A stretch of DNA of 64,000 nt, taken from the sequence record OM718002.1, one strand, 5' to 3'. Position numbers and translations under genes: made by a program. Numbering within the stretch: position 1 is the stretch's first letter; the number at the start of each line of letters is the position of its first letter. This document shows positions 28,283-61,465 of this stretch, piece by piece. The notes beneath the pieces are model-generated. The model did no database searches. It saw only the letters and a list, made by a program, of their open reading frames with translations, and was not told the origin of the DNA.

Positions 28283-30421
<2,139 letters not shown>

Positions 30422-59070: not shown

Positions 59071-59123
59071 TAAAAATATTACTGATTGTATAATACTATG
59101 TAAGAAGTCATGTCCATACGTTC

Positions 59124-59200
59124 GCGCTCATAGTTCAGTTGGTTAGAATACCCGCCTGTCACGCGGGTGGTTAGGGGTTCGAGTCCCCTTGGGCGCGCCA
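59124..59200 (+). tRNA. tRNA-Asp(GUC)
   Basis: Cloverleaf; loop CT-GTC-AC; G73-CCA. Confidence 0.95.
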
Positions 59201-59205
59201 TTTAA

Positions 59206-59239
59206 TTCCGTGATAGCTCAGTCGGTAGAGCAAGTGACT
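59206..59239 (+). repeat. 34-bp direct repeat: truncated 5' half of tRNA-Asn (second copy at 61389-61422)
   Basis: TTCCGTGATAGCTCAGTCGGTAGAGCAAGTGACT is identical in both places. Confidence 0.92.
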
Positions 59240-59252
59240 TTTACGATTTCAT

Positions 59253-59339
59253 TGGTAAGTACCCGAGTGGTAGCAGGGAGCGGACTGTTAATCCGTTGGC
59301 GAAAGCCCACCGTAGGTTCGAATCCTACCTTACCAGCCA
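59253..59339 (+). tRNA. Atypical tRNA-Asn(GUU) with a Tyr-like class II body
   Basis: Acceptor TGGTAAG/CTTACCA, G73-CCA; D-arm CCC/GGG; anticodon CT-GTT-AA; variable arm GGC-GAAA-GCC; T-arm GTAGG-TTCGAAT-CCTAC. Confidence 0.85.
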
Positions 59340-59423
59340 AATTCTAAAGAGTAGCTTCGGCTACTCTTTTATGTTGCCATGGGTTATCTTATGAATTAAA
59401 ATGATTTACTTGAGAGCACACTC

Positions 59424-61293: not shown

Positions 61294-61328
61294 AAATAAA
61301 TAATACTCAGATTGTAATAATATGTAGT
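61294..61328 (+). promoter_or_regulatory. TAC-N14-TATG promoter for tRNA-Asn
   Basis: 35-bp identity with the chmA upstream promoter. Confidence 0.7.

Positions 61329-61389: not shown

Positions 61390-61465
<76 letters not shown>

Follow-up and report, generated by a model that had tools for sequence, protein, structure and literature searches.

A class II tRNA-Asn gene in Pseudomonas phage Churi and its association with HNH endonuclease genes in phiKZ-type relatives

A 64,000-nucleotide stretch of sequence record OM718002.1 (here called the window, meaning the whole stretch that was analyzed) carries, at positions 59253-59339, a gene for a tRNA-Asn with the anticodon GUU and the long variable arm of a class II tRNA. 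The source of the window, which it matches at 100% identity, is Pseudomonas phage Churi, a phiKZ-like jumbo phage. Class I is the textbook architecture of bacterial tRNA-Asn, and the GenBank label of the gene is plain tRNA-Asn. We find that this class II tRNA-Asn is a real, conserved gene whose fold is kept by selection and that, in relatives of Churi, genes of the same kind lie next to genes for HNH endonucleases inside split class I tRNA-Asn genes. The reading we favor, at a probability of about 0.68, is that the Churi gene encodes a functional decoder of Asn codons and is spread by a homing-endonuclease cassette, which targets class I tRNA-Asn genes and brings this tRNA along as a substitute.

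The class II tRNA-Asn gene, its family and its identity

ARAGORN calls a tRNA-Asn(gtt) with exactly these boundaries, and the sequence scores 55.8 bits against the Rfam tRNA model RF00005, for which the gathering score is 29; the Rfam alignment places an 11-nucleotide insertion in the variable region. The five-arm cloverleaf is the minimum-free-energy fold. Its acceptor stem has seven pairs, the first being U1-A72, followed by the discriminator G73 and an encoded CCA, while the D arm (CCCGAG..GCAGGG) has a 3-pair stem and the anticodon loop reads CUGUUAA. The variable region of 15 nucleotides forms a GGC-GAAA-GCC hairpin, with a 3-bp stem capped by GAAA. It therefore has the more than 10 nucleotides with a stem-loop of their own that define class II, and not the 4- to 5-nucleotide loop of class I, which is 5 nucleotides long in the second tRNA-Asn gene of the window. 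An earlier note on this DNA had described a class II body with GUU, U1-A72, and G73, and all of these were seen again by ARAGORN, Rfam, folding, and direct reading.

That GTT might be a misread GTA, the case that the earlier note had named as fatal to its account, is ruled out as a sequencing error by the identical sequence in many isolates and runs. The 87 nucleotides are the same in the independently isolated phages T2P and HUST_1 and differ by one base in phiKZ. Similar genes are present in 24 phage records (8 at 99% identity or more and 16 at 95 to 99%), and the 100% identity extends to isolates of different countries. All sampled words of positions 59100-59420 occur in 12 DNA runs from several studies, and an 18,990-nucleotide contig, which may itself derive from the sample behind the Churi record, contains this interval without differences.

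The RNA evidence consists of assembled contigs from three RNA runs with phiKZ, which was told by T-to-C at 59271. These contigs extend from the scar described below across the class II tRNA to the terminator of phiKZ site B. Word depth in the nanopore run among them is 45 to 96 thousand over tRNA-Asp, 8 to 16 thousand over the class II tRNA, and below 0.6 thousand further downstream. An adaptor-joined 5' end lies at 59104, from where the depth climbs, and poly(A)-joined 3' ends lie at 59341, which is not separable from the CCA end, and at 59372, just past the terminator hairpin. The phiKZ contigs thus support, short of proof, transcription and processing of the class II tRNA. A fragment of host tRNA-Asn is present as a contig in run X12.

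The gene belongs to a family that is widespread among phages. BLAST with the 87 nucleotides also matched the tRNA-Asn of T5-like phages and of the T4-like Serratia phage CHI14, in the anticodon arm, the GAAA variable arm, and the T arm. A search of phage tRNA sets, one of the checks suggested in the earlier note, was made by scanning viral contigs for a GUU loop and a T loop at class II spacing, which matched at least 120 loci; ARAGORN, run on the matches listed, recognized at least 121 class II tRNA(GUU) genes, at least 89 of them distinct, in at least 120 viral contigs. The family counts given from here on refer to these listed matches. The discriminator is G73 in 81 of the 89 sequences and A73 in 45 of the 47 tRNA-Tyr(GUA) genes of the same contigs. 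The first pair is U1-A72 in 56/89 and G1-C72 in 21 to 23, by two parses, and among the Tyr(GUA) genes it is G1-C72 in 41/47; class I tRNA-Asn genes are few in these contigs and combine G73 with U1-A72. A separate Tyr(GUA) gene stands alongside in 55 of the 120 loci and a class I tRNA-Asn gene in 14, leaving 106 without one. When both spacings were accepted, about 13 of 80 were class II among the matches listed. From cellular genome contigs, the same pattern gave 11 ARAGORN-called class II tRNA-Asn genes among the matches listed, one of them phiKZ-type and several in actinomycete genomes; the other listed matches were tRNA-Ser variable arms, partial tRNA-Asn-like repeats, and unrelated repeats. 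The rarity of class II tRNA-Asn in cells is thus only roughly supported.

Selection keeps the fold. Across 17 phiKZ-type relatives, 99.2% of cells are in standard pairs, and 14 of the 23 pairs have changed on both sides; the compensatory changes cover 6/7 acceptor pairs and 3/3 variable-arm pairs, and all five helices are supported. None of 500 shuffles scored as high, and slid controls pair 27 to 55% of cells. Invariant in all 17 relatives are U1-A72, G73, and the anticodon loop; the search pattern partly fixed the anticodon loop and T loop of these relatives and left the acceptor end free.

The identity elements of the Churi tRNA suggest that it is charged with asparagine and decodes Asn codons faithfully. 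The anticodon and G73 are the main marks for asparaginyl- and aspartyl-tRNA synthetases (AsnRS and AspRS), and both of these marks of bacterial tRNA-Asn, GUU and G73, are read directly in the gene. In Pseudomonas aeruginosa, Asn-tRNA is made through a nondiscriminating AspRS (ND-AspRS) and GatCAB (PMC2330236), and U1-A72, the pair shared by the Churi gene and its phiKZ-type relatives, is required by bacterial GatCAB (PMC2811023, PMC1635274). In P. aeruginosa, ND-AspRS would be expected to charge the class II tRNA and GatCAB then to convert it, a route that agrees with GUU, G73, and U1-A72. The class II tRNA-Asn genes examined from phages of enterobacteria have G1-C72. Enterobacteria use AsnRS rather than GatCAB, and the first pair thus appears to track the charging route of the host. 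OMKO1 and T2P encode no tRNA-Asn other than the class II one. With its Asn marks and the class I gene also present at 61390-61465, the class II tRNA would be a second Asn decoder in Churi, as the earlier note had proposed.

Like bacterial tRNA-Tyr, the tRNA has a class II body in which the D arm follows the pattern CCCGAG...AGGG, the variable stem has 3 bp, and the anticodon loop fits CUGUNAA, but it differs in having GUU, G73, and U1-A72 in place of GUA, A73, and G1-C72, so that a Tyr identity is contradicted by the bases at positions 1, 72, 73, and 36. Mistranslation of Asn codons as Tyr, an alternative offered in the earlier note, fits poorly with an acceptor end that has no Tyr features and with phages in which this is the sole phage tRNA-Asn. 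The Tyr-like body itself is only moderately supported. When the anticodon is masked, the Churi tRNA scores 31.5 bits with a Tyr profile and 29.5 with a Ser profile, a lead of only 2 bits, and the scores with class I Asn and Leu profiles are 18.7 and 15.3 bits. The nearest canonical tRNA outside the family is the tRNA-Tyr of Acinetobacter phage Ab_121 (67/87 positions), and a class II tRNA-Lys of Caulobacter phage CcrColossus (contig L006, 600-689) is closer still (71/87 positions). A BLAST search for the nearest Escherichia coli tRNA found none at the database size used. Of 100 family members, 64 score best with the masked Tyr profile, 22 with Ser, and 10 with Leu, and therefore either the long arm was acquired on more than one occasion or the bodies have drifted widely apart. 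The earlier note had inferred an identity switch; that a single changed base recently turned a tRNA-Tyr into this tRNA is at odds with a gene that sits in an old, widespread family and with co-resident Tyr(GUA) genes that keep A73 and G1-C72. We also rejected a recent derivation from the phage's own tRNA-Tyr, since the tRNA-Tyr of PA1C and BRkr are dissimilar to the class II tRNA-Asn.

Split class I genes and the tRNA-HNH cassette

For the linkage of the class II tRNA to an HNH gene, the genomic evidence is direct. In phiKZ, the arrangement is swapped relative to Churi: site A, beside tRNA-Asp, holds an intact class I tRNA-Asn gene, and the downstream site B is split by a 774-bp insert that separates nucleotides 37 and 38 of class I tRNA-Asn. 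The insert consists of a linker, the class II tRNA, a terminator hairpin, and an HNH open reading frame (ORF; PHIKZ296), in that order, with the class I 3' half beyond, and it has no target-site duplication. The domain of the encoded protein is Pfam HNH_3 (PF13392). Both class I halves carry point changes, which affect the anticodon stem and the T loop at one position each, and the split gene therefore appears to be decaying. Megablast with phiKZ site B found the insert in about 10 phiKZ-type genomes and an empty site with an intact class I gene in about 20 others, Churi included, with flanks that are 98 to 99% identical; Churi site B (61390-61465) is the uninvaded form of the gene split in phiKZ. 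This polymorphism of presence and absence at one precise site, together with the missing target-site duplication, is the pattern expected of a homing cassette.

The same architecture recurs, at about 83% identity, in PA1C and BRkr (about 300 kb) around a class I gene variant of their own, which has a compensating change in its acceptor stem (TCCGCGA/TCGCGGA) and whose anticodon arm has since been partly lost. In L358, a 250-kb contig of an uncultivated phage, the 5' half of a class I gene is followed by a class II tRNA-Asn that is built differently (Leu-like D arm), an HNH gene, and the class I 3' half; in the contig L104 and phage Psa21, only the 5' scar of the class I gene is left. HNH homologues, which share 59 to 76% identity, lie about 70 nucleotides 3' of a class II tRNA-Asn in phiKZ, PA1C, BRkr, L039, L104, Psa21, L357, and L358. 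A hidden Markov model of the HNH family gave 15 matches to the ORFs of a subset of the fetched loci, 9 of them no more than 90 nucleotides from a tRNA-Asn(GUU). A paralogue of 59% identity lies about 75 nucleotides 3' of a 78-nucleotide tRNA-Thr(UGU) in phage phiLBG22 (L356, 1348-2064), and BRkr has the same protein; a tRNA-plus-HNH module thus exists for another isotype. More distant members of the HNH family adjoin tRNA-Asp, tRNA-Gly, and tRNA-Val genes. The phiKZ HNH ORF (L002, 5653-6207) has, relative to that of PA1C (L007, 4369-4926), an extra A in a poly-A run just past the PA1C-type start codon, and through this frameshift the annotated PHIKZ296 start falls about 25 residues later than in the PA1C version. 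The phiKZ protein may be a degenerating, inactive endonuclease.

Churi appears to hold the remnant of such a cassette, comprising a 37-nucleotide 5' scar of a class I gene, a 9-nucleotide linker, the class II tRNA, and a terminator (Table 1). The scar is identical to 61390-61422 of the intact class I gene, diverging thereafter, and aligns with both the 5' half of the split gene (phiKZ site B) and the intact gene (phiKZ site A). An identical nine-base linker, CGATTTCAT, stands between the 5' half and the class II tRNA at phiKZ site B. Directly 3' of the class II tRNA in Churi are the terminator and flank of site A, and this terminator is homologous to those that follow the class I tRNA-Asn and the cassette class II tRNA in phiKZ and PA1C. 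No HNH homologue of the cassette type was found in the Churi window. As relatives have HNH_3 ORFs after the same tRNA, Churi is probably an endonuclease-less derivative, a form common to OMKO1, T2P, HUST_1, and fMGyn-Pae01. Elsewhere in the window, a 46-codon open frame (28980-29117, + strand) weakly resembles the cassette HNH protein (E 0.004), perhaps by chance or perhaps as a piece of a different HNH gene.

These arrangements suggest a model in which the cassette would consist of two genes, the class II tRNA-Asn and then the HNH (PF13392) endonuclease gene. Insertion into the part of a class I tRNA-Asn gene that encodes the anticodon loop would split that gene, most likely by homing: the HNH enzyme would cut a cassette-free gene during co-infection, and repair would copy the cassette in. 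The tRNA-Asn function destroyed in this way would be replaced by the cassette's own class II tRNA, whose gene, because it is built differently, is presumably no target for the HNH enzyme; the longer variable arm would put about 10 bp more between the anticodon arm and the T arm. Scar and cassette together would thus supply a DNA-level reason for a structurally different Asn tRNA, in that the cassette needs an Asn gene that is neither cut by its own endonuclease nor recombines back. In Churi, the cassette would first have entered site A (the tRNA-Asn beside tRNA-Asp), with the tRNA halves as homology, and recombination between two similar terminators would then have removed the HNH gene and the 3' half; the homology of the class I and class II terminators speaks for this loss. 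We infer this order of events, and likewise the cleavage of the class I gene by HNH and the immunity of the class II gene, from the gene arrangements.

The T5-like phages have two forms at their tRNA-Asn locus, class II in most and a class I variant in T5 and BF23. When the T5 locus (L354, 11953-12525; NC_005859, 33952-34524) was compared with that of Salmonella phage Shivani (L004, 576-658), the class I variant of T5 and BF23 measured 78 nucleotides and the class II version of T5-like phages 83, with a downstream flank common to both. In T5, the class I variant is preceded by T5.069 (172 amino acids), whose T5orf172/MUG113 domains we take to be related to GIY-YIG nucleases. This locus may be a second endonuclease-linked allele swap. 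Further along the T5 record, T5.081 (L354, 19618-20052) is labeled a tRNA amidotransferase, a label without Pfam support (best E 0.05, to an unrelated family).

Several observations weigh against the homing cassette as an explanation of the Churi gene. Homing is deduced from relatives only, because the Churi window has no HNH gene, and the cutting activity of the cassette HNH family is putative. In phiKZ, the HNH gene coexists with an unbroken class I tRNA-Asn gene at site A, which calls for either an inactive enzyme, with its roughly 25 N-terminal residues lost, or repair that works efficiently. A stretch of 11 bp around the anticodon (GACTGTTAATC) is common to the class I and class II genes, so that immunity of the class II gene is not self-evident, and T5 carries a class I variant instead; a long arm is thus unnecessary for immunity. 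In T5-like and other phages, the class II tRNA-Asn genes mostly lack a neighboring HNH gene of the cassette family. The RNA evidence is from phiKZ contigs, neither from Churi nor from tRNA-seq. Finally, docking models place the GatB tail near the variable loop (PMC2811023), and GatCAB may therefore handle a long arm poorly.

An unlikely, though far from negligible, alternative holds that the long arm mainly protects the RNA: the class II tRNA would be a spare Asn decoder that escapes tRNA-cleaving defenses or toxins, among them PARIS AriB, PrrC-like enzymes, and colicin-E5-type tRNases, and its link to HNH genes would be incidental hitchhiking. Such protection, which the earlier note had raised as a possibility, can coexist with the cassette model. 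AriB cuts tRNA-Lys, tRNA-Thr, and tRNA-Asn and also needs contacts beyond the anticodon arm, for example in the D loop (PMC12409363). Long-arm tRNAs of Lys, Thr, and other isotypes are also present among the phage contigs sampled. The class II tRNA-Asn family extends over phages and hosts that are unrelated, in most cases with no HNH gene adjoining, and its Tyr-, Ser-, and Leu-like bodies suggest that the long arm was recruited repeatedly. The class II tRNA nevertheless keeps the exact AriB cleavage site of E. coli tRNA-Asn, U36-A-A-U-C/C41 (the slash marking the cut), and the T5 tRNA-Asn that helps against PARIS belongs to class I and has an altered anticodon stem (PMC12409363). The PARIS study was considered as support for class II and rejected, since T5 proper encodes the 78-nucleotide class I variant at that locus and the PARIS evidence therefore does not transfer to the class II gene. 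No tRNA-Asn-cleaving defense is documented here for P. aeruginosa, and the direct genomic evidence in the phiKZ-type group favors a cassette at the DNA level.

It is improbable that the tRNA reads Asn codons but carries Ser, Tyr, or (should GatCAB reject the long arm) Asp, as deliberate or tolerated mistranslation. SerRS takes no account of the anticodon, and nematodes mischarge class II tRNAs whose anticodons are unexpected; the masked Ser profile lies close to that of Tyr, G73 is as in tRNA-Ser, and the position of the GatB tail also counts in favor of mischarging. However, tRNA-Ser needs G1-C72 and a long variable arm with a stem of about 5 to 7 bp in addition to G73, and the Churi tRNA has U1-A72 and a 15-nucleotide arm with a 3-bp stem, which is short beside the 15 to 23 nucleotides, mostly 19 to 20, of the Ser tRNAs in the same contigs. 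Both the arm length and the first pair make a Ser identity appear unlikely. The acceptor end, in the family at large as in Churi, matches class I tRNA-Asn and not tRNA-Tyr, the first pair follows the charging route of the host, and a mischarged tRNA would be the sole phage tRNA-Asn in OMKO1 and T2P and would stand without a class I Asn gene in most of the listed loci.

It is scarcely credible that the gene is a decaying tRNA-like remnant carried by recombination or that the split gene is a spliced, intron-containing one: the class II tRNA does adjoin an obvious pseudogene fragment, and the phiKZ insert does lie in the anticodon loop, the site of bacterial group I introns, and hold an endonuclease ORF, but strong compensatory covariation, an invariant anticodon loop and G73, and complete identity between countries speak against a remnant, while an intron is contradicted by the insert's own terminator, the exon mismatches in phiKZ, the missing anticodon-arm part in PA1C, the absent 3' half in Churi, and the lack of any match to the Rfam group I intron model (Intron_gpI) in the phiKZ insert at E up to 10.

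Neighboring features and further observations

Table 1. Features of the tRNA unit and of the second tRNA-Asn gene in the Churi window
Feature	Position	Strand	Basis and remarks
Promoter-like motif TATAATACTATGTA	59089..59102	+	Exact match; upstream of the unit of tRNA-Asp, scar, and class II tRNA
tRNA-Asp(GUC), first gene of the unit	59124..59200	+	ARAGORN; Rfam 68.4 bits
Scar: nucleotides 1-37 of class I tRNA-Asn, ending in the anticodon loop, G34->T	59207..59243	+	Sequence comparison
Linker CGATTTCAT, left end of inserted cassette	59244..59252	+	Nine bases, shared with phiKZ
Class II tRNA-Asn(GUU)	59253..59339	+	87 nucleotides, encoded CCA; ARAGORN, Rfam, fold, covariation
Terminator hairpin: 10-bp stem, UUCG loop, then UUUUAU	59346..59369	+	Fold -14 kcal/mol, z -4.3
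Intact class I tRNA-Asn(GUU), site B	61390..61465	+	ARAGORN; Rfam 69.3 bits

The motif TATAATACTATGTA is a putative promoter of the unit, with the nanopore 5' end at 59104 just downstream. A copy with 2 mismatches lies at 61313-61326, 5' of the second tRNA-Asn gene, and the number of matches in the whole window is no more than chance. The terminator hairpin went uncalled in a simple terminator scan and was found by folding. Scar and linker (59207-59252) lie inside the unit, between tRNA-Asp and the class II tRNA, and should be set free as a small RNA resembling a tRNA half when RNase P processes the class II tRNA. Folded alone, this segment showed no unusual stability; depth at the scar junction is high in the phiKZ nanopore RNA run, in a sequence that is shared with the intact class I gene and host tRNA-Asn.

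Variable regions of unusual length were also seen in other isotypes. Class II-like tRNA-Lys (CUU or UUU, 88 to 90 nucleotides, GAAA-capped arm) are present in L006 and in the genome contigs L306 and L239. ARAGORN tRNAs of at least 81 nucleotides in the sampled phage contigs make up 9/45 for Cys, 7/43 for Trp, 10/62 for Thr, 11/103 for Met, 7/62 for Glu, and 7/64 for Ile. The reverse anomaly, a 5-nucleotide variable region in a "tRNA-Leu," is represented by 34 distinct sequences in these contigs (e.g., L019, 5013-5086), among which miscalls are possible.

Three kinds of tRNA-Asn-like or repeated sequence were noted in bacteria. Many bacterial contigs, such as L244, L252, L258, L297, and L336 (Verrucomicrobia, Acidobacteria, and Deltaproteobacteria), have apparent 3' parts of tRNA-Asn genes, often repeated, with an extra short hairpin between the anticodon loop and the T arm and an upstream sequence that is not tRNA-like; ARAGORN does not call them, and they may be integration-site duplicates or an unusual form of tRNA-Asn. 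A conserved repeat of about 60 nucleotides, with the core GTGTTAATCCGTCGATGAACCC followed by GGTTCAACTCCGG, occurs in contigs such as L242, L263, L296, L302, and L353 (Pseudomonas, Denitrificimonas, and Thiopseudomonas) in one or two copies per locus, about 400 nucleotides apart, and ARAGORN finds no tRNA in it. Tandem tRNA-Asn-like repeats, 128 or about 430 nucleotides apart, are present in Saprospiraceae (L294, 5502-5800; L304; L237). Their D arm is of the class I kind, their loop has GUU, and their variable arm is long and palindromic (CCCGATAGCTATCGGG); the T and acceptor regions are aberrant, and these repeats are likewise uncalled by ARAGORN.

Relation to known systems and significance

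These genes fit two known kinds of element, namely homing endonucleases that are encoded by free-standing genes within tRNA clusters and variant tRNAs of phages. SegB of T4, with its "intronless homing" (PMC2330249), and the F-Tfl HNH endonucleases of T5 are likewise encoded by free-standing endonuclease genes among phage tRNA genes and are absent in relatives. SegB prefers a tRNA-Asn gene as its target and is inherited through cleavage and recombinational repair, with co-conversion of flanks (PMC2330249). SegB is, however, a GIY-YIG enzyme encoded between genes, whereas the enzyme of the cassette is of the HNH_3 type and is encoded inside the anticodon loop of the target tRNA gene. Unlike SegB, the cassette brings a structurally different replacement tRNA of the same specificity, and its cleavage of the target is putative. 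Group I introns in bacterial tRNA genes share with the cassette an insertion in the anticodon loop, an internal endonuclease ORF, and a patchy distribution among close relatives, but the cassette has no ribozyme match or splicing; the interrupted gene decays, and the second tRNA that is carried in would restore the function.

The T5 tRNAs for Lys, Thr, and Asn that act against PARIS (PMC12409363) and the T5 tRNA-Tyr that acts against retron-Eco7 (PMC11555353) are also divergent phage copies of host tRNAs and possible nuclease-insensitive spares. These anti-immunity tRNAs are of class I (or a normal class II in the case of Tyr) with point changes near the cut, whereas in Churi the whole architecture differs and the anticodon arm is host-like. 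Nematode nev-tRNAs and bacterial allo-tRNAs also combine a long-arm body with an anticodon normally found in a class I tRNA; they keep Leu or Ser identity and mistranslate. The class II tRNA-Asn family carries the acceptor marks of its own anticodon (G73, U1-A72), and faithful decoding is therefore to be expected of it, unlike nev- and allo-tRNAs. The full-text literature, in which the older work on T5 and T4 tRNAs is largely uncovered, gave no account of a long-arm phage tRNA-Asn or of this cassette, and the pairing of class II tRNA-Asn with HNH genes, though recurrent in many phages, seems to be undescribed.

A broader interpretation can be put forward only tentatively, with confidence somewhat short of even. 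The cassette might be an unrecognized kind of selfish element, an endonuclease joined to a "rescue" tRNA of the same specificity and different architecture, that invades and destroys the resident tRNA-Asn gene without an intron; the class II family, spread over hundreds of phages from unrelated groups, would then be faithful, its long arm being kept because the gene, and perhaps the RNA, evades nucleases directed at tRNA-Asn.

The differing tRNA-Asn content of closely related therapeutic phiKZ-type phages is explained by these findings, OMKO1 having the class II gene only, PA7 two class I genes, and Churi one of each. tRNA-Asn appears as a contested target both at the DNA level, for SegB and the cassette HNH family, and at the RNA level, for PARIS. 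The link to HNH genes suggests a third harmless way into an essential RNA gene, besides self-splicing introns and intergenic placement, which is to carry a substitute gene. A large family of class II tRNA-Asn with the correct acceptor marks means that tRNA class is not fixed by amino-acid identity, and it offers a natural test of how well a long arm is tolerated by AsnRS, ND-AspRS, GatCAB, and EF-Tu.

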